Source: Camelus ferus (Eukaryota). From it: a DNA stretch of 64,000 bases. Positions within the stretch are counted from its first letter, which is position 1. Each line of letters starts with the position of its first letter. The notes beneath the pieces are model-generated. The model did no database searches. It saw only the letters and a program-made list of their open reading frames with translations, and was not told where the DNA came from. The DNA is taken from NCBI RefSeq assembly GCF_009834535.1, contig NC_045728.1, positions 7,502,001 through 7,566,000 on the forward strand, given 5' to 3'. This document shows positions 3,376 to 47,600 of the stretch, piece after piece. The position numbers and the translations under genes are program-made.

Positions 3376-4390
3376 ATGCCGCGGGGAGCGGCCTGCCCCA
3401 CCTGCGTGGCTCCTCCCACAGCCCGGCCGCCGCACGCGCGGGCCCAGGCGGGCCCCACCGCATCCTGCCCGGGGCTCACGGGCAGCCCAGCGGCCTCCCT
3501 GCCCTGGGCCTGAGCACAGGGACAGCCTCACTCTTACCTTCTCCGAGGAGTCTCTGAAGACTTAGTCGGCGAGGCGGAGGCCGGCGGCCCCAGCGAGGTC
3601 CTGCGCGCGGGCTCCCTGCACCTCGGCAGGTGCTGGGCCTGAAGGTGAGCGTCGCTGGGCCGGGGTGACAGCACGGAGGCTGCCACAGGACACGAATGGG
3701 GGCCCTCAGGCCAAACCTCGTTCGGCAGCAACTTCGACAGGGGTGACTCGGAAGCCACCCTGGGGCAGATCAGCCACCGTCAGAAGCACCGTGGAGCTCC
3801 TGCCTCGGGCCCAGCCCTGGCCCACAGTGGCCCCGAGCGAGGCCATCCACCAACTGACGGCAGCCTGGCCCCTGGCACGTCCCACAGGGACAAATGTTCA
3901 GCCATCTAACGCCGGGCCAGTCTGAGGACGCCAGGTGGGCTGAGCCGCACACCTGGCGCTGAGGACTTGATGGGCGGAGGCGCCGCGTGGAGCGCGGGGA
4001 GCATGCGCACGGGCCGCGCGCACGAGGCCGACGCGCAGGGTTTCGGCAGAAAGGAGGCGGGCGGCCGCGGCCCGGCCGGGAGGGCCTGGCGGAGGAGGAC
4101 AGCAGGGACAGCAGGGTGAGTACGTTCACGCCCAAGATTCTGAGTACGTTGCAAAGAAGTAGATCTGGTCACCAGCTTGGGCCAAGTTTGTCTCAGGCGG
4201 GGCCCTGGTGCCAGAGCAGCCCTGACCCGGCTGAGCTCAGCTCCGGCTCCGCTTGGTGGATGTCCCGCCCCCTCGCCCCGCCGCCCCCTCGCCCCGCCGC
4301 CCCCTCGCCCCGCCGCCCCCTCGCCCCGCCGCCCCCTCGCCCCGCCGCCGCCTCGCCCCGCCGCCGCCTCTCCTGTCTTGGCGCTTTGGG
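3376..4390. promoter_or_regulatory. CpG island, probable bidirectional promoter
   Basis: Very GC- and CpG-dense against an AT-rich background. GC box GGGCGG at 3972-3977, NRF1-like GCATGCGCA at 4001-4009, minus-strand donor AAG|GTAAGA at 3537, plus-strand donors AAG|GTGAGC at 3645 and AGG|GTGAGT at 4116. Confidence 0.8.
4265..4370. repeat. 16-bp GC-rich minisatellite (CCCCCTCGCCCCGCCG), about 6.5 copies
   Basis: The single T of each unit recurs at 4273, 4289, 4305, 4321, 4337, 4353 and 4369 (period 16). The last units carry a C>G variant. Confidence 0.95.
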
Positions 4391-7620: not shown

Positions 7621-8559
7621 AAATGAAGGTGAGATAAAACTTTACCAAACAAACACAAGTTGAGGGAATTAATCAGCACTAGACCTGCTGTAAAAGAGAT
7701 GCTGAAAGGAGCTCTTCAAGCTGAAACAAAAGAATACTAATTAGTAACATGGAACATAAAATATACAATACACTGGTAAGTAAAAAAATCTAGTCAATTT
7801 CAGAATACAATACTATGTAAGATGGTGGTGTGTTAACCACTCAACTCAAGAAAAAGTTAAAGGACAAAACTATTAAAAATAACTATAGCTACAATAATTT
7901 GCTAATGGATACATAACATGCAATGAGGTAAATTGTGACATCAGAATGAGGGAGGAAAAGGGTAATATTTTTGTATGTGATCACAGTTAAGCTGTTATCA
8001 CCTTAAGATAGTGTTATACCTGCGAAATACTTTATGTAAGTCTCATGGTAATCACAAAGCAAAAGCCTACATTAGATACAAAAAGATAAAGAGAAGAGAA
8101 TAGGAACATAACATTAGAGAAATTCATCAAGTCACAAAAGAAGACACCAAGAGAGGAAAAAAAGAACAAGGGAATTATAAAACAGCCAGAGAGCAATTAA
8201 GATGGCATTAGTAAGTCGTTACCTATCAATCATCACTGTAAACGTAATTGGTTTAAATTCTTCAGTCAAAAGGCATAGAGTGGCTGAATGGATTAAAACA
8301 GAACGAAAAAGAGACCTAGTTGCCTGCTGCACGCAAGAGACTTACTTTAGCTTTAGCACATAGACTGAAAGTGGGGATGTGAAAAAGATATTCTATACAA
8401 GTGGAAACCAAAAAACAGTAACAGTAACTATACTTATATCAGACAAAATTAACTTTAACTCGACAGCTATAGCATGAAACAAAGACGGTAATGATATGAT
8501 GAAGAGGAAACATTACAGCTGATACCACAGTAGTACCAAAGATCGTAAGACTACTATGA

Positions 8560-8744
8560 NNNNNNNNNNNNNNNNNNNNNNNNNNNNNNNNNNNNNNNNN
8601 NNNNNNNNNNNNNNNNNNNNNNNNNNNNNNNNNNNNNNNNNNNNNNNNNNNNNNNNNNNNNNNNNNNNNNNNNNNNNNNNNNNNNNNNNNNNNNNNNNNN
8701 NNNNNNNNNNNNNNNNNNNNNNNNNNNNNNNNNNNNNNNNNNNN
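8560..8744. other. N run (185 nt)
   Basis: Direct count. Other N runs: 13815-13959 (145), 37835-38022 (188), 47372-47519 (148). All four are inside L1 sequence. Confidence 0.99.
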
Positions 8745-9649
8745 ACTTGTGAATTGTACCAAACATTTAAGCAAGAGTAAGACCAAAACTTCTAAAATGC
8801 TTCCAACAATTGAAGAAAGGGAACACCATCAAACTCAGTTACAACCAGAATTGCCTTCACAACAATGTCAGGTAAAGACGGTGAGAACTGAAAACTACAG
8901 GCCAGTATCTCTGATAAACATAGATGCAAAAATTCTCAACGGAAATCTCACAAACCAATCCAACAGCACATTAAAAGGATCATACACACAACACAAACAC
9001 ATGCTGCGTGCAGAATTACCTAATGCTGAATAACATCCGTAGTCCCATACCCTGTTAACCTTATACCAACGTCAAATTCCTGGTTTTGCTGCTGTTCTGC
9101 GGTTGTAGAACATGTCACCGTGGTAAGAGGCTGGGTGGATTTCAAGGGACTCTATCCCTAAGTTTTGAAATTTCCTGTGAATCTATAATAATTTGAAAAT
9201 TTTAAAAATTCGACTTCTCACAAGCGTGATTATAAGTTAATACATACATGGAAATTATAAAGTCATGTTTCTTTGTAATGGAAGCTGATTAACAGTGATT
9301 TTTCTTATAGATTTGATTTTAATCTATAAAAAGCAAATACATACAGCATCAGAACGGCCTAAGGTAATTCCATTTCCATGGAATTATTCTACCAGTAGAT
9401 GTTTTATTAGGCAATCATCTCTGAAATCAAATAAAAAGATCCTTTGATTTTTGTCTGTAAAATTTGTATAAAAACTGATTAAAGGGACTCAAATATTTTA
9501 AAGGGCCATAGTAAGTAAACTTTTCTGAAATGTTCATATATATTTATGAACTTAAATTCTTAAAAATAATGTTAACCTAGATTTATAATTAGTGAATTTT
9601 CAATGACATTAATTACTTGCATCTTTATGAGGGACAGGAGAGAATCCTT

Positions 9650-9810
9650 TCTTCTATGCTCTGGGGGATATATAATCTCTGATGGAAAATTAACATTTAC
9701 TGTCACAATTATAGTGTAAATGCGCACCCTCTGCTCTTCCCTGAAAAGCTTACCATGAGGGGAAGATCCTAGGGGGACAGCTACACCTGGATTTCTAATC
9801 AGGTCCAGAA
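9650..9810 (+). promoter_or_regulatory. Candidate OR promoter (O/E-like sites plus TAAT core); copy at about 38620-38785
   Basis: Imperfect O/E (EBF, TCCCNNGGGA)-like sites CTCTGGGGGA, ATGAGGGGA and CCTAGGGGGA, plus TAATCAGGTC at 9796-9805, about 1.7 kb upstream of the CDS. Short motifs can occur by chance. Confidence 0.3.
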
Positions 9811-10914
9811 GAATTATAAGCCTTTAGCAGATGCCATGTGCTGTGTGACACGGTGGCTCAGATACCAAGTCTGTGGTTTCCCTTCACAGTCTCTTAATAA
9901 GTTTATAACCACAAGATTACTCTGAACCATAGACTGACTGCTATGATTCAGACCGTGGTATCTGGGCTATGATTCTTTTACCAATAAAGGGAGAAGACTC
10001 TGTGACTACATCTGCTCAGCCTTGATATCTGCAAAGCCCGTTCTTCTTCCAGGACAGTGGAGGTGAAACACGCCTACAGGGCCAGGACTGAGTCTCCTCA
10101 GTGGAAACAGAGTGAGTTAGCCAAGTGTCTGTTTTTGTCTCTCTGTTGCTGAAAAATGAGGGAAAGGATTGATACTGAAAAACAAGAAACTCCGAAGTCG
10201 GGAGCTCTGACGCGACTGCCTGCATTGTTCTTAGCACACCCTCTGTGTTGGCTGCATCCTCATTCTGGTAGCAGGAGAACGGTAGCAGTTCCAAGTGACA
10301 AACCCAGAACATAGCAACGTCAGAAGAAGAAGAAATCAGTTTCTAAGAATTTCTTAGTTGAAATATACATATAGAAAACTTGACATACGTAATAAGTGTA
10401 CAGCTTGGCATATTTCCACAAACATAACAACTAACTAAATCAGCAGTTAAATTAATTACGCTTCTCTTCCATGCTGTCCTACAAAACCAAGGAAAGCACA
10501 CCCACCTTCCTTTATTCATTCTCTGTCCAGCTAGGATGGAAGGGAGGAGGAGAATGTGTGGAAACACTGGAATGTACGATTAAGTACAAAGCTTAGGGTC
10601 CAAGGGTTCACCTCAGTACCTGTTACTGATCATTGACTTCCTGGATTCTTGTAGTTAAGCATCTGAAAACCTTATAGACTGTGAGAGACTTCCTGGCAGC
10701 AAATATGTATTTGGGTCTCTGCCTCATAGAAATCCTCTCTTTTGTTGTAGGTCATCACAGGGGAACTGAGGTATCTAGTAGGGTGATGGATACCCTGTTT
10801 TTCAAGTATGTTAACCCATTACTGTATTTATTTGCTTTAGGCTGGTAAGGATATAGACTCAAAATGCTAAAAAGAATTTTAAAAATCTCCATTTTCTTGC
10901 TTCCCCTCTCCCAC

Positions 10915-11070
10915 ATTTTGATTCTGATGTCCCCTTTTGCATCTTCATGTTTATTCTCTTGCTGTTTATTGTAGTTACTGCATTTCCAATTGTGGTTTTC
11001 TCTGCTCTGTAGATTCCTGCTTTTTATTTAGAGAAGACCTTTCAGTATTTCTTTCAGGATAGGTTTAGGT
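10915..11070 (-). mobile_element. L1 inter-ORF fragment (also in copy B at about 39895-40050)
   Basis: ttttgattctgatgtc...tagagaagacctttcagtatttctttcaggataggtttag resembles antisense L1 ORF1-end/inter-ORF sequence. Confidence 0.5.
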
Positions 11071-11177
11071 TTATCTCGTAGGGTAATGGAAACATGACCA
11101 GGAACTAGGAAGTGAGGGATCAGATGAACAGGAGGGAGAGACAGGGATGCATCCCCACTCCTGAAGCTCACCATCAG

Positions 11178-11440
11178 GTAGGCTCGTTCCTCGTCGGCTC
11201 CGCCCCTCTGTCTTCTGGTAAAGATAGAGCAGTTCTTTGTAACACGCAGCTCACGCAACCAAAGGCGGTGATTTCAGTGCTGAGGGGTGTGTGTGGCAGT
11301 ACCTTCAGACCCTATGAAACAAAGGAGGACTTCTGTGATTTCTGCCAGTCTGAGTCTGTTTCTCATAACGCTCATATAAAAGACAGTTTGTCAGGACAGA
11401 GCTGTGTTCCTATTAATGGAGTTGTCTTCTGTTCTCACAG
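11178..11440 (+). other. Candidate last 5'UTR intron (263 nt) of the OR8B3-like gene A
   Basis: Donor CAG|GTAGGC at 11178 and acceptor TGTTCTCACAG| at 11440, 16 nt before the ATG. Confidence 0.5.
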
Positions 11441-11456
11441 ATTTCCGAAGTTGAGA

Positions 11457-12401
11457 ATGCTGGCTAGAAATGACTCCTTAGTGACTGAATTTATTCTTGC
11501 CGGGTTAACAGACCGTCCAGAGCTCCAGCAACCCCTCTTTTGCTTGTTTCTGATGATCTACATTGTCACCTTGGTGGGCAATCTTGGCTTGATCATTCTT
11601 ATTGGTCTAAATTCTCACCTCCACACCCCCATGTACTATTTCCTCTTCAACTTGTCCTTCGTTGATCTCTGTTACTCATCTGTTTTCACCCCCAAGATGC
11701 TGATGAACTTTGTGTCCATGAAGAATATCATCTCCTATGTCGGGTGCATGACTCAGCTGTTGTTCTTTCTCTTTTTTGTCATCTCTGAATGTTATATGTT
11801 GACCTCAATGGCCTATGATCGCTATGTGGCCATCTGTAATCCGTTGCTGTATAAGGTCACCATGTCCCGTCGGGTCTGTGTGGTGCTGTCTCTGGCTGCA
11901 TATGTGATGGGATTTGCCGGAGCCTCTGCCCACACCGGGTGCATGCTCAGACTAACCTTCTGCAATGTTAATATCATCAACCATTACTTGTGTGACATCC
12001 TCCCACTCCTCCAGCTCTCTTGCACCAGCACTTATGTCAACGAGTTAGTAGTTCTTATTGTGGTAAGTATTAATATTGCGGTACCCAGTGTCACCATCCT
12101 GGTTTCTTACATCTTCATCCTCACTAGCATTCTTCACATCAGATCTGCTCAAGGAAGATCAAAAGCTTTCAGTACCTGTAGCTCCCACGTCATTGCTCTT
12201 TCCCTTTTTTTTGGTTCAGCAGCATTTATGTATCTTAAATATTCTTCTCCTGGATCTATGGAGCAGGGAAAAGTTTCTTCTGTTTTCTATACTAATGTGG
12301 GACCCATGCTCAATCCCCTGATCTACAGTTTGAGGAACAGGGATGTCAAAGTTGCACTGAAGAAATCCCTGTTTAAAATCCAGAGGAGAAACATGTTCTA
12401 A
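11457..12401 (+). CDS. OR8B3: Olfactory receptor, OR8B2/OR8B3-like (copy A), 314 aa, intact
   Basis: [19 protein letters not shown] start with N-glycosylation sequon; [25 protein letters not shown] and [12 protein letters not shown] motifs. Closely resembles human OR8B2/OR8B3 as I recall them. The true start is the ATG at 11457, not the GTG at 11112. Confidence 0.95.
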
Positions 12402-12786
12402 TTAGAAACAGCAATAATGTAAAGACATTCAATTTTGTACTTAATTTTTATTAATGATTTTCAAGGTGAGAATTCATTCATAACCATGTTGCTTCTACAG
12501 ATTGTATTATGTGTGGTGTAATGGATTTGTGTCATCATTTCCCTTATAGCCAATCTTGTCTCATTTTTTTCCTCTATCTCTTGCACCTTGTAACAGTTTA
12601 CTAAATACTAATAGCATTTTTATAAAAGGAAATATGAACTGATTTTTTTCATACTCCTTTTTTGTCTCCTGGGCTATTCCTAATCAGGACAAATATGGTG
12701 AATTTTGTAAGTACATGAAGTTAAAATTAGAACTTGCTGATCTAGATACAAAAGTGCCAAATACTGGAAAAGAATTCTCTCTGTGG

Positions 12787-14035
12787 TTTTTTTTTTTTTG
12801 GTATAAATGTATTTTTATTTAAGTATAGTCAGTTTACAATGTGGTGTCAATTTCTGGTGTACAGCACAGTGCTTCAGTCATACATGAATATACATATATT
12901 CATTTTCATATTCTTTTTCACTGTAAGCTACTACAAGATATCAAATATAGTTCCCTGCACTATACAGTAAGTAGAAACTCGTTTACTCTGTATTTATCAG
13001 TTAATATCTAGAAATATGAAACTCTAATTTATCACCTCCCGCCCCCCTCCTCCCCTGGTAACCACAAGTTTGTTCTCTATGTCTGTGAGTCAGTTTCTGT
13101 TTTGCAGATAAGTTCGTTTGCCTGTTTTTTTTTTAAGATTCCTCATATAAGTGGTACTATATGGTATTTTTCTTTCTTTTTCTGGCCTACTTCACTTAGA
13201 ATGACAATCTCCAGGTCCATCCATATTGCTGCAAATGTCATTGCTTTATTATATTTTATGGCTGAGTAATATTCCATTGTATAAATGTACCACCACTTCT
13301 TTATCCAGCTATCTGTTGATGGACATTTAGGTTGTTTCCATGTCTTGGCTATTGTAAATAATGCTGCTATGAACACTGGGGTGCATGCATTTTTTCAAAT
13401 TAAAGTTCCCTCTGGATATATGCCCAGGAGTGGGATTGCTGGATCATCTGGTAAGTCTGTTTTTAGTCTTTTGAGGAATCTCCATACTGTTTTCCATAAC
13501 AGCTCTGCCAAACTACATTTCCACAAACAGTGTAGGAGGATTCCCTTTTATCCACACCCTCTCCAGCATTTATCCTTTGTGGACTTTTGAATGATGGCCA
13601 TTCTGACTGGTGTGAGGTGATACCCCATTGTAGTTTTGATTTGTATTTCTCTGATAACTAGCAATATTGAGCATTTTTTTATGTGCCTATTGGGCATTTG
13701 TATGTCTTCACTGGAAAATTTCTTCTTTAGGTCTTCCGCCTATTTTTGGATTGGGGTGTTTGTTTTTTCCTTTATAGTTGTATGAGTTGTTTATATATTC
13801 TGGAAATTAAGCCCNNNNNNNNNNNNNNNNNNNNNNNNNNNNNNNNNNNNNNNNNNNNNNNNNNNNNNNNNNNNNNNNNNNNNNNNNNNNNNNNNNNNNN
13901 NNNNNNNNNNNNNNNNNNNNNNNNNNNNNNNNNNNNNNNNNNNNNNNNNNNNNNNNNNNAGACTTCCCTAGGAGAACATTGCTGAGATTTATATCAGATG
14001 ATGTTTTGCCTGTTTTCTTCTAAGAGGTTTATAAT
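12787..14035 (-). mobile_element. 5'-truncated L1 (ORF2 C-terminus plus 3'UTR)
   Basis: Poly-T at 12787; minus-strand ORF 13143..13376 [19 protein letters not shown]...YTMEYYSAIK is the L1 ORF2 C-terminus. Absent from the paralogous flank of copy B. Confidence 0.9.
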
Positions 14036-14864
14036 GTCTTTAAACAATATTGTTACTGGTATACACAAGGAGGATTCAAAGAAATGTCTTCATTGCAAAT
14101 TGTGTAGACAGCTTGCAGTAGGCTCAGATCCTCCTAATGTTGTCTTTTCTGTTTTTCATACTACTTTTTATTATTCTTACTTTTCTTACTCCCTTTGAAA
14201 ATGGCAAAATCTGTTTTACATGACACCTGCTTCTGAGAGCCTCTTTCAGCCAAATGCATTTAATATTCAAGAGAACACATAAAAGCCCACCATTTATTGC
14301 CAACACAGCATTAAGAGAAGGGTGGTTAGAGGAATAATACATACATATCTCAGGACTCAATAAGCATGATGGGTGGTTTATTATACAACTGCATCCATTA
14401 CTATCTAAAATGACACCAAATGTTTTGAAAGAAGCATATAATTCTTATTGTAAATTTTGTTTTTTATTGCTTAAGGAAAATACTACACATTTGGTTAGGA
14501 GAAACATCTTAGCCATGTTTTACTTCTCCAGTGATGTATCATGAAAAACAGGTGCATGTTAAGACAGTAAACCATATTCCTATCAACAGCATTTTGTGAA
14601 ATTACTTAAAAGTTGCCTCACCAATAAGATAATAAATATATTTACCTAGATGCTCTTCCCTATAATTTCCCCATTTCTCCAGTGCATTTCCCATTCGTAT
14701 ATTTGGCGTATCAAATATAGCGTTAGGTCAAAAACTTCTCGTATTGGATCCCGTTGTTTGAAAAGTAGTAATACATTTAATGTTATAAGGGATGATTAAT
14801 AAAATATAATAATAAGTAGCAATAACAAATAATCCGAAAGAACTTTGGGGTATAATTTCTTTTG

Positions 14865-20849: not shown

Positions 20850-21782
20850 ATGGCCTTAGGGAATGACTCTTCACTGACTGAGTTTATCCTGCTGGGTTTA
20901 ACACAAGAGCCAGAACTCCAGCTGCCCCTCTTTTTCATTTTCTTGGGAATATATATGGTCACTGTGGTGGGAAACATTGGCTTGATTATTCTGATCGGTC
21001 TGAATCCTCACCTGCACACTCCCATGTATTACTTTCTTTTCAATCTTTCCTCCATTGACCTCTGCTACTCTTCTGTCATAACTCCCAAAATGCTGATGAG
21101 TTTTGCAAACCAGCACGTAATCTCTTATGCAGGGTGCATGGCTCAGCTCTATTTCTTCTCCTTCTTTGTTATTGATGAGTGCTGCATTTTGACATCAATG
21201 GCTTATGACCGATATGTGGCCATCTGTAAGTCCCTGCTTTACAAGGTCACCATGTCCCATCAGGTCTGCCTCCTGCTGACTGTGGGTTCATATGCGATGG
21301 GGCTTGTGGGCGCCACGGCCCACACTGGATGCATGCTGAGACTGTCCTTCTGTGATGGCAACATCATCAATCATTACATGTGTGACATACCTCCTCTCCT
21401 TCGGCTCTCCTGCACCAGCACCTACATCAATGAGCTGGTGGTGTTCATCGTGGTGGGCATTAATGTCATAGTGCCCAGTCTCACCATCTCCATTTCTTAC
21501 ACCTTGATCCTCTCCAGCATCCTCCGCATCCGTTCTACAGAGGGCAGGTCCAAAGCCTTCAGTACCTGCAGCTCCCACATCATTGTGGTTTCTCTTTTCT
21601 TTGGATCATCAGCATTCATGTATCTTAAGCCTTTTCCTGCCGGGTCTCTGGATCAAGATAAAGTGACCACAGTGTTTTACACCATTGTGGGGCCAATGAT
21701 GAATCCTTTCATCTACAGTTTGAGAAACAAAGATGTCCAAGTTGCCCTGAGTAAGACTTTGAGGAAAAAGTTGTTCTGCTAA
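20850..21782 (+). CDS. Olfactory receptor family 8 (OR8B/8C-like), 310 aa, intact
   Basis: MALGNDSS start; [25 protein letters not shown] and [14 protein letters not shown] motifs. Confidence 0.95.
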   Translation: MALGNDSSLTEFILLGLTQEPELQLPLFFIFLGIYMVTVVGNIGLIILIGLNPHLHTPMYYFLFNLSSIDLCYSSVITPKMLMSFANQHVISYAGCMAQLYFFSFFVIDECCILTSMAYDRYVAICKSLLYKVTMSHQVCLLLTVGSYAMGLVGATAHTGCMLRLSFCDGNIINHYMCDIPPLLRLSCTSTYINELVVFIVVGINVIVPSLTISISYTLILSSILRIRSTEGRSKAFSTCSSHIIVVSLFFGSSAFMYLKPFPAGSLDQDKVTTVFYTIVGPMMNPFIYSLRNKDVQVALSKTLRKKLFC

Positions 21783-31630: not shown

Positions 31631-32567
31631 ATGTCTACTTTAAATTATTCCTCAGTGCCTGGGTTTATCCTTGAAGGACTGACAAAGCGCCCAGAGCTTC
31701 AGTTGCCACTCTTCCTCCTGTTCCTGGGAATATATGTGGTCACAGTGGTGGGGAACCTGGGCATGATCCTCTTAATTGCCAACAGTTCTCAGCTTCACTC
31801 CCCAATGTATTATTTTCTCAGTCATTTATCATTCATTGATCTCTGTTACTCCTCCGTCACTACCCCAAAGATGCTGGTGAACTTTGTGTCAGAGAAGAAC
31901 ATTGTCTCCTTTCTGGGATGCATGACTCAGCTTTACTTCTTCCTTATTTTTGTGATTGCAGAAGGCTACCTTCTGACTACCATGGCATATGACCGCTATG
32001 TTGCGATCTGTAGCCCACTGCTTTACAATGTTATCATGTCCCACAGGGTCTGTTCCATGATGACGGCTGTGGTGTATTCACTGGGGTTGTTTGGGGCCAC
32101 AGTTCATACCACCCGGATGTCAATGTTGTCCTTCTGTGGGTCTCATACTGTCAGTCATTATTTTTGTGATATTCTCCCCTTTGTTGACCTTCTCTTGCTC
32201 CAGCACCCACATTAATGAGATTCTGTTGTTTATCATTGGGGGAGTTAACACCTTAGCACCAACACTGGCTGTACTCATCTCTTATGTGTTCATCCTCTCT
32301 AGTATCCTCCGTATTCGCTCTGCTGAGGGACGATCCAAAGCCTGTGGCACTTGTAGCTCCCACCTTGTGGCTGTGGGGATCTTTTTGGGGTCTATAACAT
32401 TCATGTATTTCAAGCCCCCTTCTGGCAATAATATGGAGCAGGAGAAAGTGTCCTCTGTGTTCTACACCACGGTGATCCCCATGCTGAATCCCTTGATTTA
32501 CAGCTTGAGGAACAAGGATGTGAAGAATGCACTGAGGAGGGTGGTTGGGGAAAGGCTGCAATCCTGA
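31631..32567 (+). pseudogene. OR8D2: OR8D2-like olfactory receptor with a single +1 frameshift
   Basis: ORF 31631..32215 and the distal part of ORF 32091..32567 join at [13 protein letters not shown]. Total length is 937 nt = 936 + 1, with the extra base in the CCCCTTT run at about 32175-32182. [39 protein letters not shown] matches human OR8D2 as I recall it. Confidence 0.85.
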
Positions 32568-36432: not shown

Positions 36433-36467
36433 TTTTTTTATTGAGTTATAGTCAGTTTACAATGTTG
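36433..36467 (-). mobile_element. 35-nt extreme 3' tail of a young L1
   Basis: tttttttattgagttatagtcagtttacaatgttg is the reverse complement of the L1 3' end seen at 48303-48340. No TSD found. Confidence 0.75.
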
Positions 36468-37598
36468 ACTGAAAATGGGGGTGTGAAAAAAGATAGTCTA
36501 TACAAGTGGAAACCAAAAAACAATAACAGTAACTATACTTATATCAGACAAAATAAACTTTAACTCAACAGCTATAGCATGAAACAAAGACGGTAATGAT
36601 ATGATGAAGAGGAAACATTACAGCTGATACCACAATAGTACCAAAGATCATAAGACTACTATGAACAATTATGCACAAACAAATTGGATAATCTAGAAGA
36701 AACAGGTAAGTTCCTGGAAACAATCTACCAAGACTGAAGTATGAAGAAATAAAAAATCTGAACAGACCAATAACAATTCAGGAGATTGAATCAATAATCA
36801 AAAATTCTCCCAGCAAAGAAAAGCCCAGGACCAGAAACCAGAAAGGTTCACTTGTGAATTGTACCAAACATTTAAGCAAGAGTAAGACCAAAACTTCTAA
36901 AATGCTTCCAACAATTGAAGAAAGGGAACACCATCAAACTCAGTTACAACCAGAATTGCCTTCACAACAATGCCAGGTAAAGACTATGAGAACTGAAAAC
37001 TACAGGCCAGTATCTCTGATAAACATAGATGCAAAAATTCTCAACGGAATTCTTGCACAAACCAATCCAACAGCACATTAAAAGGATCATACACACAACA
37101 CAAACACATGCTGCGTGCAGAATTACCTAATGCTGAATAACATCCGTAGTCCCATACCCTGTTAACCTTATACAAATGTCAGTTTCCTGGTGTTGCTGCT
37201 GTTCTGCGGTTGTAGAACATGTCACCGTGGTAGGAGGCTGGGTGGATTTTAAGGGACTCTATCACTAAGTTTTGAAATTTCCTGTGAATCTAAAATAATT
37301 TGAAAATTTTAAAAATTCGACTTCTCACAAGCGTGATTATAAGTTAACACATACATGGAAATTATAAAGTCATGTTTCTTTGTAATGGAAGCTGATTAAC
37401 TGATTTTTCTAATAGATTTGATTTTAATCTATTAAAAGCAAATACAGCGTCAGAACAGCCCAAGGTAATTCCATTTCCATGGAATTATTGTACCAGTAAA
37501 TGTTTTATTAGGCAGTCATCTCTGAAATCAAATAAAAAGATCCTTCGATTTATGTCTATAAAATTTGCAAAAAAAACTGATAATTTAAAGGGACTCAA

Positions 37599-38452
37599 TG
37601 AGGTATCTCCTCACACCAGTCAGAATGGCCGTCGTTCAAAAATCCACAAATGACAAATGCTGGAGAGGCTGTGGAGAAAGGGGAACCCTCCTGCACTGCT
37701 GGTGGGAATGCAGTTTGGTGCAGCCACTATGGAAAACAGTGTGGAGATTCCTCAAAAGACTAGGAATAGACTTACCATATGACCCAGGAATCCCACTCCT
37801 GGGCTTGTATCCAGAAGGAAATCTACTTCAGGATNNNNNNNNNNNNNNNNNNNNNNNNNNNNNNNNNNNNNNNNNNNNNNNNNNNNNNNNNNNNNNNNNN
37901 NNNNNNNNNNNNNNNNNNNNNNNNNNNNNNNNNNNNNNNNNNNNNNNNNNNNNNNNNNNNNNNNNNNNNNNNNNNNNNNNNNNNNNNNNNNNNNNNNNNN
38001 NNNNNNNNNNNNNNNNNNNNNNCATTCTAAGTGAAGTAAGCCAGAAAGAGAAAGAAAAATACCATATGAGATCGCTCATATGTGGAATCTAAAAAACAAA
38101 AACAAAAACAAACAAACAAACAAAAACAAAGCGTAAATAAAGGACAGAAATAGACTCACAGACAGAGAATACAGACTTGTGGTTACCAGGAGGGTGGAGG
38201 GTGGGAAGGGATAGACTGGGATTTCAAAATTGTAGAATAGATAAACAAGATTACACTGTATAGCACAGGGAAATATACACAAAATGTAATGATAACTCAC
38301 AGAGAAAAAAATGTGACAATGAGTGTGTATATGTCCATGAATGACTGAAAAATTGTGCTGAACACTGGAATTTGACACAACATTGTAAAATGATTATAAA
38401 TCAATAAAAAATGTTTAAAAAAAAAATAAAGCAGATGAAAGTCATGAAAAAA
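37599..38452 (+). mobile_element. Young 5'-truncated L1 with TSD and short 3' extension
   Basis: TSD AAAGGGACTCAA at 37587-37598 and 38453-38464; single empty site in copy A at 9481-9492. ORF2 C-terminal peptide [37 protein letters not shown]. Confidence 0.95.
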
Positions 38453-40155
38453 AAAGGGACTCAAATATTTTAAAGGGCCATAATAAGTAAACTTTTCTGA
38501 AATGTTCATATATATTTATGAACTTAAATTCTTAAAAATAATGTTAACCTAGACTTATAATTAGTGAATTTTAAATGACATTAATTACTTGCATCTTTAT
38601 GAGGGACAAGAGAGAATCCTTTCTTCTATGCTCTGGGGGATATATAATCTCTGATGGAAAATTAACATTTACTGTCACAATTATAGTGTAAATGCGCACC
38701 CTCTGCTCTTCCCTGAAAAGCTTACCATGAGGGGAAGATCCTAGGGGGACAGCTACACCTGAATTTCTAATCAGGTCCAGAAGAATTATAAGCCTTTAGC
38801 AGATGCCATGTGCTGTGGGACACGGTGGCTCAGATACCAAGTCTGTGGTTTCCCTTCATAGTCTCTTAATAAATTTATAACCACAAAGTTAATCTGAACC
38901 ATAGACTGACTGCTGTGATTCAGACCGTGGTATCTGGGCTATGATTCTTTTACCAATACAGGGAGAAGACTCTGTGACTACATCTGCTCAGCCTTGATAT
39001 CTGCAAAGCCCGTTCTTCTTCCAGGACAGGACAGTGGAGGTGAAACACGCCGACAGGGCCAGGACTGAGTCTCCTCAGTGCAAACAGAGTGAGTTAGCCA
39101 AGTGTCTGTTTTTGTCTCTCTCTGTTGCTGAAAAATGAGGGAAAGGATTGATACTGAAAAACAAGAAACTCCGAAGTCTGGAGCTCTGACGCGACTGCCT
39201 GCATTGTTCTCAGCACACCCTCTGTGTTGGCTGCATCCTCATTCTGGTAGCAGGAGAACGGTAGCAGTTCCAAGTGACAAACCCAGAACATAGCAACGTC
39301 AGAAGAAGAAGAAATCAGTTTCTAAGAATTTCTTAGTTGAAATATACATATAGAAAAGTTGACATACGTAATAAGTGTACAGCTTGGCATATTTCCACAA
39401 ACATAACAACTAACTAAATCAGCAGTTAAATTAATTACGTTTCTCTTCCATGCTGTCCTACAAAACCAAGGAAAGCACACCCACCTTCCTTTATTCATTC
39501 TCTGTCCAGCTAGGATGGAAGGGAGGAGGAGAATGTGAGGAAACACTGGAGTGTACGATTAAGTACAAAGCTTAGGGTCCAAGGGTTCACCTCAGTACCT
39601 GTTACTGATCATTGACTTCCTGGATTCTTGTAGTTAAGCATCTGAAAACCTTATAGACTGTGAGAGACTTCCTGGCAGCAAGTATGTGTATGGGTCTCTG
39701 CCTCATAGAAGTCCTTTCTTTTGTTGTAGGTCATCACAGGGGAACTGAGGTATCTAGAAGGGTAATGGATACCCTGTTTTTCAAGTATGTTAACCCATTA
39801 GTATATTTATTTGCTTTAGGCTGGTAATCATATAGGCTCAAAATGCTAAAAAGAATTTTAAAATCTCCATTTTCTTGCTTCCCCTCTCCCACATTTTGAT
39901 TCTGATGTCCCCTTTTGCATCTTCATGTTTATTCTCTTGCTGTTTATTGTAGTTACTGCATTTCCAATTGTGGTTTTCTCTGCTCTGTAGATTCCTGCTT
40001 TTTATTTAGAGAAGACCTTTCAGTATTTCTTTCAGGATAGGTTTAGGTTTATCTCGTAGGGTAATGGAAACATGACCAGGAACTAGGAAGTGAGGGATCA
40101 GATGAACAGGAGGGAGAGACAGGGATGCATCCCCACTCCTGAAGCTCACCATCAG

Positions 40156-40420
40156 GTAGGCTCGTTCCTCGTCGGCTCCGCCCCTCTGTCTTCTGGTAAA
40201 GATAGAGCAGTTCTTTGTAACACGCAGCTCACGCAACCAAAGGCAGTGATTTCAGTGCTGAGGGGTGTGTGTGTGGCAGTACCTTCAGACCCTATGAAGC
40301 AAAGGAGGACTTCTGTGATTTCTGCCAGTCTGAGTCTGTTTCTCATAACGCTTATATAAAAGACAGTTTGTCAGGACAGAGCTGTGTTCCTATTAATGGA
40401 GTTGTCTTCTGTTCTCACAG
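40156..40420 (+). other. Candidate last 5'UTR intron (265 nt) of the OR8B3-like gene B
   Basis: Same donor and acceptor as copy A; 2 nt longer because of (GT)5 versus (GT)4. Confidence 0.5.
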
Positions 40421-40436
40421 ATTTCCGAAGTTGAGA

Positions 40437-41381
40437 ATGCTGGCTAGAAATGACTCCTTAGTGACTGAATTTATTCTTGCCGGGTTAACAGACCGTCCAG
40501 AGCTCCAGCAACCCCTCTTTTGCTTGTTTCTGATGATCTACATTGTCACCTTGGTGGGCAATCTTGGCTTGATCATTCTTATTGGTCTAAATTCTCACCT
40601 CCACACCCCCATGTACTATTTCCTCTTCAACTTGTCCTTCGTTGATCTCTGTTACTCATCTGTTTTCACCCCCAAGATGCTGATGAACTTTGTGTCCATG
40701 AAGAATATCATCTCCTATGTCGGGTGCATGACTCAGCTGTTTTTCTTTCTCTTTTTTGTCATCTCTGAATGTTATATGTTGACCTCAATGGCCTATGATC
40801 GCTATGTGGCCATCTGTAATCCGTTGCTGTATAAGGTCACCATGTCCCGTCGGGTCTGTGTGGTGCTGTCTCTGGCTGCATATGTGATGGGATTTGCCGG
40901 AGCCTCTGCCCACACCGGGTGCATGCTCAGACTAACCTTCTGCAATGTTAATATCATCAACCATTACTTGTGTGACATCCTCCCACTCCTCCAGCTCTCT
41001 TGCACCAGCACTTATGTCAACGAGTTAGTAGTTCTTATTGTGGTAAGTATTAATATTGCGGTACCCAGTGTCACCATCCTGGTTTCTTACATCTTCATCC
41101 TCACTAGCATTCTTCACATCAGATCTGCTCAAGGAAGATCGAAAGCCTTCAGTACCTGTAGCTCCCACGTCATTGCTCTTTCTATTTTATATGGGTCAGC
41201 AGCATTCATGTATCTTAAATGTTCTTCTCCTGGATCTATGGAGCAGGGAAAAGTTTCTTCTGTTTTCTATACTCATACGGGACCCATGCTCAATCCCCTG
41301 ATCTACAGTTTGAGGAACAAGGGTGTCAAGGTTGCACTTAGGAAATCCCTGTTTAAAATCCAGAGGAGAAGCATGTCCTAA
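40437..41381 (+). CDS. OR8B3: Olfactory receptor, OR8B2/OR8B3-like (copy B), 314 aa, intact
   Basis: Same motifs as copy A; the start is the ATG at 40437 after the acceptor at 40420. C-terminal motif is SLRNKG rather than the usual SLRNKD. Confidence 0.93.
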
Positions 41382-42384
41382 TTGAAGCAGCAATATTGTA
41401 AAGAAATTCAATTTATGATTTAATTTCATTGGTGTTTTTCAAGAAGAATCTTTATCACCATGTTGCTTCTACATATTGTATTATATGTGGTAAAATAGAT
41501 TTCTCTTAACATTTTCCTTGTAGCTGATCTTGTCTCGTATTTGGCCTCTGCATCTCTTGCATCTTACATCAGTGTACTAAATAACTAATGATGTGTTTAT
41601 GAAAGGAACCAATATGCTGACCTTTTTAAAAAATCATTTTATCATACTTCTATTTTCTGGGTAAGTCTTAATCTGGACAAATATGGTGAATCATAAATCA
41701 CAGAAAGTTAAAATTACAGCTTGCTTACCAAAACACAGAAGTGCCAAATACTTCTTGATAAGCATTCTCATTCTTATCAATACTGTTACCAATATAGGGA
41801 AGAGGAGTCAATACAATGTCTTCAATACAGACTGTTGTACAGCTTAAAGTATAATCGAATCCCCTGGTCTTTTCCTTCTGCTCTATTTTTCTTATCAGTT
41901 TTCTTTTTATATTTTGTCCTTTTAATATATTTGTCCTTTTATATTTTGTCCTTTTTATATTTTGTTCCCTTTGGGTATGGCAAAATCTATACCATAAACC
42001 ACCTGTTTTTGAGAGCCTCTATCAGCCCAGTTCATTTAATATCGAAGAAAATACATGTAGCTCCACCTTTAACTGCCAAAGATGGCCTTAACAGTATGAT
42101 TAAAGGGATAATACATATGCACCTTATGACCCCAGTAAGAGGTTGGTTTATTATAACACTGGCATTGATTACGATCTAAAATGACATCAAATATTTTGAA
42201 AAAGAGCATGTAGTTCTTACTGCAGAGTTTATTTATCACTTAAAGGACAATACTGCACATCAAGCTAGGAGAAACATGTAAGACACTGTTTTACTTCTAT
42301 AATAAGATTTATCATAAAAAGGTTTATATTAATGATAATAAACTACATTCCTTGCAGTGTTTTATGAGCTTATTTAAACCAATA

Positions 42385-44611: not shown

Positions 44612-47600
44612 TTTTTTTTTAATTGATGCATAGTTGATTTACAGTATTAAATTAGTTTCAGGTGTACAGCATAATGATTCAGTATTTTTACAGATTATAC
44701 TCCATTAAAAGTTATTAGAAGATACTGCCTATAATTCCCTGTATTATACAATATATCCTTGTTGCTTATCTATTTTACACACAGTAGTTTGTATCTCTAA
44801 GTCCCATACATGTAATTTGTCCTTGCCACCTTCCCTCTGCCCTTTAGCAGCTACTAGTTTGTTTTCTGTATCTGTGAGTCTGTGTCTGTTTTGCATATAC
44901 ATTCGTTTGTTTTCATTTGTAAGATTCTCTATAGAAGTGATATCATACAGTGTTTGTCTTTCTCTGACTTATTTCACTAAGCATAATATTCTCTAGGCCC
45001 ATCCACATTGCTGCAAATTGCAGAATTTTAATCTTTTTTATGGTTAAGTAATATTCCATTTTATATCTATCTACCTGTCTATCCTCTGCCTGTCTATGTC
45101 TGTCTGTCTATCTATCTATCAATCAATCATATCTTTATCCTTTATCTGTTGATAGCCATTTGGGTTGCTTCCATATCTTGGCAATTGTAAATAGTGCTGC
45201 TATGAACACTGGAGTGCGTGTATCTTTTCCAATTAGTGTTTTCATTTTTTTCCCAGATATACCCACAGCAGTGGAAATGCTGGATTATATTGTAGATCTG
45301 TTTTTAGTTTTTTGAGGAATTTCCATACTGTTTTCCATTGTGGCTGCAGCAAATTTACATTTCCAAAAACAGTGTACAAGGGTTCTCTTTTCTTCACATC
45401 TTCTCCAATGTTTTTTGTTTGTAGATTTTTAGTGATAGCCATTCTGACAGGTGGGAGGTGATATCTCTTTGTTTTGATTTGCATTTCTCTGATGATTAGC
45501 GATGTTGAGCATCTTTTTATGTGCCTATTGGTCATTTGCATGGATTCCTTAGAAAAATGTCTATTTAGGTGTTCTTCCCATTTTTAAATTGGGTTGTTTG
45601 TTTGTTGTAATGTTGAGTTGTATGAGCTGTTTATATATGTTGGATATTATCTCCTTATTGGTCATATCATTACAAATATTTTCTCCCATTCTGTAGATTG
45701 TCTTTTCATTTTGTTGATTATTTTCTTTGCTGTGCCAAAGATTTACATTTAATTAGATTTCATTTATGTTTGCTTTTATTTCTTTTGCCTTAGGAGACAG
45801 ATGCAAAAATATTGCTATGATTTATGTCAAAGAGTGTTCTACCTACGTTTTCTTTGTGGTGTTTTATGGTTTCATGTCTACCCTTTTGGTCTTTAATCCG
45901 TTTTGAATTTATTTTTGTATACGGTCAGGAAATATTATAATCCCATTGTTTTACATGTAGCTGTCCTGTTTTCCTAGCATCACTTGCTGAAATGAATGTC
46001 TTTTCTTCATTGTATATTTTTACCTCCTTTGTTGTAGATTAGTTGACCATAAGTGTGTGGGTTTTTTTTTTGGGCTCTCAGTTCTATTTCATTGACCTAT
46101 GTGTCTGTTTTTGTGCCAGTCCCATACTGTTTTCATTACTGTAGCTTTGTAGTATAGTCTGAAGTCAAGTGTGGGAGCACACTCATTGGTTAATAAGTTG
46201 TAGGGCTACAATGCAGAAATGCCTAGCTTATCTTAGGTGTAGGTTGTTAGCTGTAGGGCTGCTTCTGCTTCTTGGAAAACCATTACCTTTTGCCCTTGCT
46301 GAAAACAGCAGGGCATTCTTCACTTACCTAGTTAAATCTTGATCTTTATTGGGTCTTTCTGCCTGCCTGGTTTCCATTATCAATTGTATACTCCCTAAAC
46401 ATGTAGATTAAGACTAATGTTTCTGTTTTTCACAAAACTGCTGACCTACATACCTGTATGTACACCATACCCCTTACACATTCCTATGACATGCTTTACC
46501 TTAATACTTTATTTGACTAGTCTCAATAAATACAAGGGTTTCTAAGGGGCTCAGGGAGTTAGATTTGGTCTCTGGGTCCCTCTCACTCTCTTGACTTGAT
46601 AAAGTCATGAGTAATTCACTCTTCCATGGTGGGTCTTTGTCGGACAAAGCCCACATCAAGGATGGTGATACCTCTAACTGTTCTTTTTTCTCAAGATTGC
46701 TTTGGCAATTTGGGGTCTTTTGTGGTTCTGTATTAATTTTAGGATTAATTGATCTAGTTAGGTGAAAAATGTCAGATATTTCGATAGGGATTGCATTAAA
46801 TCTGTAGATTTCTTTGGGTAGAATGACCCTTTTAATACTATTAATCCTTTGAATCCATGAGCACAGGATAGCGTTCCATTTCTTTGTATCGTATGTAATT
46901 TCTTTTATCAGTATTCTATAGTTTCCGGATGATAGGTCTTTCACATCCTTAGTTAAGTTTATTCCCATGTATTTTATTCTTTTTGAACCTATTTTAAATG
47001 GAATTTGTTTTTTGCTCTCTTTTTCTGAGAGTTCATTATTAGTGAATGGAAGCACAACAGATTTCTGTAGGTTATTTATGTATCCTGTGACCTTGCTGAA
47101 TTCATTTATTAGTTCTAATAGTTTTGAGGTGGAGACTTTAGGGTTTTCTATATGAAGTATCGTATTATTTGCAAATAGTGACAATTTTACTTCTTCCCTT
47201 CCAATTTGGATACCTTCTGTTTCTGTTCCTTGTGTGATTGCCGTGGCTAGGACTTCTAATACCATGTTAAATAGAAGTTGCAAAAGTGGGTACCTTCATC
47301 TTGTTCTTGAATTTGGAGGAAAGGTTTTCATTTTTTCACCTTTGAGTATGTTGTTAGATGTGAATTTGTACNNNNNNNNNNNNNNNNNNNNNNNNNNNNN
47401 NNNNNNNNNNNNNNNNNNNNNNNNNNNNNNNNNNNNNNNNNNNNNNNNNNNNNNNNNNNNNNNNNNNNNNNNNNNNNNNNNNNNNNNNNNNNNNNNNNNN
47501 NNNNNNNNNNNNNNNNNNNGGTTTTTACAATTGATTTGTGAATGTTGAACCATCCTTGTAACCGTAGAATAAATTTAACTTGATCATTGTGTGTTATAGT

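Follow-up and report, generated by a model that had tools for sequence, protein, structure and literature searches.

Evidence for recurrent gene conversion across most of an ancient pair of OR8B3-type olfactory receptor genes in camelids

The window analysed here is a stretch of 64,000 nucleotides of Camelus ferus DNA (assembly GCA_009834535.1, chromosome record CM020800.1), and all coordinates are positions within it. Two similar genes lie on the same strand within one olfactory receptor (OR) cluster, the second 28,980 bp downstream of the first:

11457 to 12401, forward strand: copy A, an intact OR8B3-type olfactory receptor gene of 314 codons plus stop (open reading frame and translation, Pfam)
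40437 to 41381, forward strand: copy B, an intact OR8B3-type gene of 314 codons (open reading frame and translation, Pfam)

Each gene is a single unbroken coding exon of about 940 bp, and its translation contains the OR motifs of its class. Both match the Pfam profile PF13853 (7tm_4; 158.5 bits and E=4e-46 for A, 156.1 bits for B, against a cut-off of 27), and PF00001 is also matched by both. In protein comparisons, their nearest named relatives are full-length OR8B3 or OR8B3-like proteins at 82-97% identity, names that are automatic annotations. These relatives span camelids, ruminants, carnivores, horses, elephants, rodents and primates. On these grounds we classify A and B as vertebrate class II olfactory receptors of family 8, subfamily B (OR8B3-type).

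The window also carries intact ORs at 20850, 49429 and 62059, and one frameshifted OR at 31631. The frameshifted gene (31631-32567, forward strand) lies between A and B and is split into two overlapping reading frames in C. ferus. An extra T at 32180 is found in C. ferus and C. bactrianus when compared with both dromedary assemblies, in which a 311-codon gene is called, making this locus a candidate for lineage-specific pseudogenisation. In the alpaca assembly GCA_048564905.1, the spacing between A and B is 22.5 kb, compared with 29.0 kb in C. ferus. The retrieved alpaca DNA between the two copies contains no called gene, where camels have two OR genes, and a 310-codon OR lies about 6.3 kb past the stop of B. 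The intervening ORs may have been lost or broken in alpaca.

The two coding sequences (CDS) are nearly identical over their first three quarters and then diverge sharply. Across CDS nucleotides 1-704 there is one difference (11762, G/T, giving L102F), and no synonymous difference over approximately 163 synonymous sites. Across nucleotides 705-945, by contrast, there are 19 differences (12161-12397), which the Nei-Gojobori method divides into 7.0 synonymous and 12.0 nonsynonymous. Together these tail differences change 11 residues from A to B: L250I, F251L, F252Y, Y262C, N280H, V281T, R295K, D296G, K302R, N312S and F314S. The contrast in difference density between head and tail is highly significant (Fisher p = 4.7e-11), and a maximum chi-square scan places the break after nucleotide 704 (permutation p <= 5e-5). 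An earlier, sequence-only reading of this DNA had counted 1/704 and 19/241 differences, the latter comprising 12 nonsynonymous and 7 synonymous changes with 11 residue changes, and direct comparison reproduces these figures exactly.

The same reading placed the conversion tract in the coding head. This holds for nucleotides 1-704 but not as a limit, as about 3.1 kb of upstream DNA is near-identical too. The near-identical region and the elements that interrupt or adjoin it are:

8363 to 12160, forward strand: homogenised block, A side, comprising about 3.1 kb upstream (intron and upstream region) and CDS nucleotides 1-704 (A/B identity, trees, AU p=1.6e-6)
36467 to 41140, forward strand: homogenised block, B side, split by an L1 insertion (self-BLAST segments)
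37599 to 38452, forward strand: B-specific, 5′-truncated L1 of about 854 bp with an A-rich tail (junction sequences, gaps in the ten-sequence alignment described below)
12402 to 12780, forward strand: 3′ flank of A, alignable to the B flank at 41382-41769 and 20-27% different from it (alignment)

Measured along the A side, the difference between copies is 4.1% at 8745-9475, 2.3% at 9481-10893, 0.5% at 10894-11456 and 0.14% in the coding head (11457-12160), before reaching 7.9% in the coding tail. The core of the block (10894-12160) differs at 4/1267 positions in C. ferus. Self-BLAST recovers the block as three paired segments, 8363-8559/36467-36664, 8745-9492/36850-37598 and 9481-12779/38453-41769. 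Its 5′ edge is sharp at 8363/36467, and the same edge is found in camel and alpaca. A splice-acceptor-like sequence (...ctcacag) lies at approximately 11434-11440, inside the A-side block. Upstream homology is broken by the L1, which carries a target-site duplication of about 11 bp (AAGGGACTCAA), occurs in every Camelus B copy, and is absent from alpaca B and from A. Masked N runs at 8560-8744, 13815-13959, 37835-38022 (contained within the L1) and 47372-47519 were left out, and alignment columns with N in the window were dropped.

Downstream of the stop codon, the flanks had been described as far more diverged than the genes, which they are: 19.5% at 12402-12520 and 26.7% at 12521-12700. Collinear homology returns at 14190-14610/41966-42378 (72% identity) and at 14797-16087/43327-44605 (74.6%), and this 72-75% identity further downstream sets the duplication's baseline divergence at about 25%. 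At either end, the well-aligned block is adjoined by sequence that resembles the 3′ end of an L1. On the A side, a T run and L1-tail-like sequence follow 12790 (within 12780-14190), and on the B side L1-tail-like sequence occupies 36434-36466, just before 36467. Lineage-specific repeats thus partly determine where the copies remain alignable.

We compared both genes, with 10-kb flanks, across five assemblies of four species (C. ferus, C. bactrianus, two of dromedary, and alpaca), yielding a ten-sequence alignment of their A and B copies. The step between head and tail is present in all five assemblies, with a shifted boundary in alpaca, and the four Camelus assemblies share the same 19 (or 18) tail differences. 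Separate head and tail trees with orthologues had been set beforehand as a test of conversion, and they proved strongly discordant, in support of it. In the tree of 12161-12780, an A clade and a B clade are each supported at 100/100, with species nested within. In the trees of 10894-12160 and 9481-10893, alpaca (A and B) instead separates from Camelus (A and B) at 100/100, and the two copies are intermixed inside Camelus. Approximately unbiased (AU) tests reject the converse arrangements in each case: an enforced A clade is rejected for the core (p=1.6e-6) and for CDS 1-704 (p=9e-4), and enforced grouping of alpaca A with alpaca B is rejected for the tail plus flank (p=6e-6) and for CDS 705-945 by itself (p=4e-6).

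Individual sites point the same way. Within CDS 1-704, seven sites are species-specific and common to both paralogues, whereas in CDS 705-945, 14/19 of the tail differences distinguish the two paralogues in Camelus and alpaca alike. Divergence in 10894-12160 is 0.3% between A and B of C. ferus and about 1.5% between A and B of alpaca, compared with 2.4-3.0% between camel and alpaca orthologues. Within the tract, then, paralogues of the same species are closer than orthologues of different species. Species-specific head sites shared by both copies, coupled with paralogue-specific tail sites, indicate interlocus gene conversion after speciation in both lineages. We consider it very probable that recurrent non-allelic (interlocus) gene conversion, and hence concerted evolution of an ancient tandem pair, accounts for the relationship between A and B.

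These patterns leave almost no credence for the idea that purifying selection alone has kept the heads identical with no exchange of sequence. TM1-TM5 of OR8B3 are indeed well conserved among mammals. Selection on the protein, however, would not remove every synonymous difference from the head, nor hold non-coding upstream DNA to 0.5-2.3% when the equivalent DNA of a deer pair differs by 20-36%, nor bring paralogues within a species closer together than orthologues between species.

Near-identical paralogues are also known to confuse assemblies and gene models, and the contrast could in principle have been produced in the C. ferus assembly if two genes that differ more had been collapsed or joined chimerically. 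Two older C. bactrianus protein models at this locus are mosaic. In one, P0117, residues 1-141 come from A/B and the remainder from the neighbouring OR at 20850; the other, P0129, combines a B-type TM6-TM7 with an A-type C-terminus. Both are probably assembly or model chimeras arising from the near-identical heads; the alternative is a real recombinant allele. For the A/B pair itself, an artefact is extremely unlikely. The same step and tail differences recur in four Camelus assemblies, alpaca has the step with its boundary shifted, and species-specific substitutions are common to both copies. Moreover, the B side has its own L1 within the block, the flanks are orthologous copy by copy, and both stretches occur in many independent sequencing runs: 20 runs from 8 studies contain the copy A sequence, and 14 DNA runs contain the B tail at >= 95%. 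In C. ferus, the case against an artefact rests on agreement across assemblies.

Two further observations concern these sequence collections. In the C. bactrianus assembly GCA_048773025.1, copy A (10001-10953 of the retrieved stretch) contains an 8-bp tandem duplication (TCCTGGTT) after CDS nucleotide 655, at approximately 12104-12111 of the window, which shifts the reading frame. Its protein is annotated LOW QUALITY, and the duplication is either a real disabling allele or an assembly error. The only RNA-seq runs in which part of the B tail was found are labelled 'reproductive system metagenome' (2025); they contain 37-49% of the sampled words of the B tail and 3′ flank (41141-41769), which could reflect host DNA carry-over or expression outside the nose.

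The pair is considerably older than its heads imply. In a tree of the 3′ flank (the first 400 bases past the stop), cow OR8B3 and the upstream fallow-deer copy join camelid A (100/99), and the downstream fallow-deer copy joins camelid B (92/91). Two donkey copies fall on the B side without a settled placement. A camelid A+B clade is rejected for this flank when ruminants are included (AU p=5e-4). Judged by the 3′ flank, copy A is orthologous to cow OR8B3 and the upstream deer copy, and copy B to the downstream deer copy. As the cow and deer flanks are split between A and B, the duplication is older than the camelid-ruminant split, which bears out the earlier view of the genes as an old paralogue pair.

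The tree of CDS 1-704 groups the same sequences by lineage: camelids (100/99), ruminants (100/99), the deer pair (97/94) and the donkey pair (99/98). The fallow-deer pair has 8/704 differences in the head and 21/241 in the tail, and further upstream its two copies differ by 20-36%. This old pair has thus had its coding head homogenised more than once while the 3′ end escaped, and the long upstream tract is peculiar to camelids. Camelid A and B differ from each other at 19/241 tail positions, and from their own deer orthologues at 25/241 and 32/241 respectively. Because the two camelid tails are closer to each other than to these orthologues, the tail was probably homogenised in the camelid stem too and escaped later. 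The homogenised domain therefore seems to have retreated in the 5′ direction over time.

A different origin for the block would be one structural event, in which a young partial duplication or unequal crossover joined the upstream region and head to an older tail. The sharp 5′ edge common to camel and alpaca would suit such an event, as would an upstream block that is long for a conversion tract. A single event cannot, however, produce lineage-specific substitutions shared by both copies in alpaca and again in Camelus, or patches that differ among Camelus assemblies (described below). Furthermore, A and B retain their ancestral positions and order, their own orthologous 3′ flanks and an unchanged copy number in Camelus, alpaca and deer. 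As an explanation of the whole pattern it is therefore very unlikely, although such an event may have been the source of the first long upstream tract in the camelid stem.

Under recurrent conversion, the question becomes where the tracts end. The sequence-only reading described an abrupt switch at the RSKAFSTC motif, with conversion ending at the most conserved motif. The abrupt break after nucleotide 704 stands, but its placement at that motif is not established. The first two tail differences (12161 and 12167) are synonymous and their outgroup polarity is conflicting. Polarisation with cow and donkey gives conflicting answers at CDS sites 705, 711 and 733; 705 and 733 lie in CpGs, the one at 705 (12161) being present in copy B. 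An old, fixed difference between the paralogues is first met at CDS 747 (12203). With conflicting polarity and a CpG at 12161, the end of the Camelus tract can be bracketed to approximately 12143-12203. This would place the end of the homogenised domain at the start of TM6, near the KAFSTC motif. Elsewhere the boundary differs, falling at approximately CDS 462-589 in alpaca and CDS 800 in deer.

Alpaca also reveals the direction of exchange. Alpaca A retains V197, G204 and T208, the states of 74-83/85 related receptors; in alpaca B and in both Camelus copies, these positions are L, S and A. Camelus A has therefore acquired B-derived TM5 residues, and cow-like nucleotides at CDS 462, 589 and 609-624 agree with this direction. 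CDS sites 517 and 585 indicate the opposite direction, so that exchange ran both ways and was patchy. The earlier proposal that conversion created two receptors differing essentially only in TM6-TM7 consequently describes the present contrast between A and B but not its origin: conversion erased older TM1-TM5 differences and created none, and it also brought the B-derived TM5 residues into Camelus A.

Exchange also appears to have continued within Camelus. Dromedary A is B-type at 9877-9943 in one assembly but not in the other, C. bactrianus A is B-type at 10075-10211 and 10559-10709, and dromedary B is A-type at 10732-10857. These assembly-specific patches suggest segregating conversion tracts. 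The core divergence between A and B in C. ferus does not exceed the orthologous divergence between C. ferus and dromedary, indicating that exchange lasted to about the Camelus radiation or later. The idea of a single recent conversion is therefore not upheld, as homogenisation recurs independently in camels and alpaca, within Camelus, and in deer.

What conversion has spared is the tail of each gene:

12161 to 12401, forward strand: A tail, codons 235-314 (TM6, ECL3, TM7, helix 8 and C-terminus), with the mammalian OR8B3 consensus except at R295 and K302
41141 to 41381, forward strand: B tail, with camelid-specific derived residues (alignments)

Among the derived residues of B, I250, L251, Y252, C262, H280, T281 and S314 are common to the B copies of Camelus and alpaca, S312 is found in Camelus, and G296 in C. 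ferus. At the positions of B's derived residues, 69-85/85 related receptors share one residue. The deer orthologue of B has the consensus at these positions, so the derived residues are specific to camelids. No third gene in the window could have donated them, as the codons for ILY and HT occur nowhere else within it.

We aligned residues 225-314, free of gaps, to the solved class II OR structures consOR5, consOR2, consOR6 and bmOR6A2. Residues 250-252 fall in the 'FYG' stretch of TM6, with residue 252 aligned to the Y of FYG in the solved receptors. Residue 262 lies at the end of TM6 and start of ECL3, residues 280-281 belong to TM7, where they precede the NP-motif proline by seven and six residues, and residues 295-296 lie in the helix-8 motif. 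The helix names for these positions are those we take from general knowledge of OR motifs.

Substitutions in the tail were counted by hand parsimony with two outgroups. The B lineage has accumulated 14 nonsynonymous and 5 synonymous changes (omega ~0.8), and the A lineage 3 nonsynonymous and 3-4 synonymous changes (omega ~0.25). The nonsynonymous excess of B over A is significant (14 vs 3, p=0.013), and the contrast in the ratio of nonsynonymous to synonymous changes is not (p=0.19). The tails differ at 7 of roughly 54 synonymous sites, a divergence only slightly lower than that of the flank (p=0.024 for a baseline of 25%; p=0.15 for one of 19.5%). With an omega of ~0.8, relaxed constraint on the B tail would be as likely as a new specificity.

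One could nevertheless propose that selection holds the boundary: tracts over TM6-TM7 arise but are purged, because A and B differ in odorant specificity and both specificities are useful. This would refine the conversion account, and it competes only with a mechanical explanation of the boundary. The seven derived residues of B are retained in both Camelus and alpaca at sites that are nearly invariant in 85 receptors, and Y252 in B restores the OR-wide Y of the FYG motif. The B reading frame is intact in all five assemblies, and B has the nonsynonymous excess reported above. Neutral drift, however, would fit the same omega, in keeping with the non-significant ratio contrast. The intact frame is itself weak evidence of function, since the head is refreshed from A and only about 240 bases must stay open by chance. 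The boundary also differs in position among alpaca, Camelus and deer, and the flank is too divergent for tracts to enter in any case. On balance, a boundary held by selection is doubtful.

We regard as unlikely the stronger proposal that TM6-TM7 of B represents a camelid-specific functional innovation, kept apart from A by selection against conversion. Such an innovation would take in F252Y at the FYG activation motif, Y262C and N280H/V281T, with the rest of the gene kept identical, including about 3 kb upstream. If true, camelids would express two receptors that share their regulation and their TM1-TM5 but are tuned differently. A three-step series of natural chimeras would then run from alpaca A, with ancestral TM5, through Camelus A, with B-type TM5 and ancestral TM6-7, to B, which is derived in both.

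Under recurrent conversion, the history of the pair can be outlined as follows. The duplication took place before the camelid-ruminant split, and several lineages have since homogenised the coding sequence, repeatedly and independently of one another. A long tract in the camelid stem extended this to about 3.1 kb of upstream DNA. After the camel-alpaca split, further nested tracts passed between the copies of each lineage in both directions, and in Camelus the last 200-240 coding bases have kept paralogue-specific states found in alpaca too. The 3′ limit is likely to be mainly mechanical, with heteroduplex or tract resolution rarely reaching the tail: the flanks past the stop differ by 20-27%, and within the tail fixed mismatches occur about once every 14 bases. 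Selection for a functional difference in TM6-TM7 may add to this limit. A long tract over DNA that is 20-36% different in deer is unusual for simple conversion, and the first long upstream tract might have used another template-switching mechanism.

Neighbouring OR paralogues have been reported to exchange stretches non-reciprocally, leaving mosaic or homogenised coding sequences between old flanks (Sharon et al. 1999, Genomics 61:24, as described in the review PMC1995454). The camel genes resemble the mosaics described in that review in being cluster neighbours with a homogenised coding head and old flanks. They differ from them, as there described, in that the camelid OR8B3-type tract includes about 3.1 kb upstream, and in that the polarity of head and tail recurs in deer. 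A literature search for OR gene conversion in camels and for OR8B3/OR8B2 conversion returned nothing specific. To our knowledge, the camelid OR8B3-type pair has not been described previously. Gene conversion of ORs is nonetheless textbook knowledge, and the camelid pair is a well-supported, ordinary case of this known process, involving no new mechanism.

The L and M opsins of primates offer a second comparison. They form a tandem pair of seven-transmembrane receptors homogenised by conversion, in which the sites of spectral tuning are kept different. The functional effects of these sites have been measured, and purifying selection is documented to act against conversion. The camel genes are likewise a tandem seven-transmembrane pair, homogenised except for a short stretch that holds the distinguishing residues. 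Unlike the opsin sites, the TM6-TM7 differences of the camel pair are known from sequence only, and the B tail evolves at an omega of ~0.8.

The value of this pair lies in its unusually clean phylogenetic evidence that two ancient OR genes can seem recently duplicated along most of their sequence. Unless head and tail are analysed apart, such genes will yield wrong orthology assignments, duplication dates and dN/dS results in surveys of OR repertoires. Near-identical heads can equally mislead assemblies and gene models, as the mosaic C. bactrianus proteins at this locus illustrate. In addition, alpaca A, Camelus A and B are natural chimeras that could be used to ask what TM5 and TM6-TM7 each contribute to odorant tuning.

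Two minor features lie elsewhere in the window. The segment 3906-4824 is GC-rich, has long open reading frames on both strands and includes a 16-bp unit (CCGCCCCCTCGCCCCG) repeated 6.6 times in tandem at 4265-4370; it resembles an island of CpG-island-like or low-complexity DNA on the margin of the OR cluster. At 46501-47283, on the reverse strand, a 260-codon open reading frame resembles a fragment of L1 ORF2 (reverse transcriptase).
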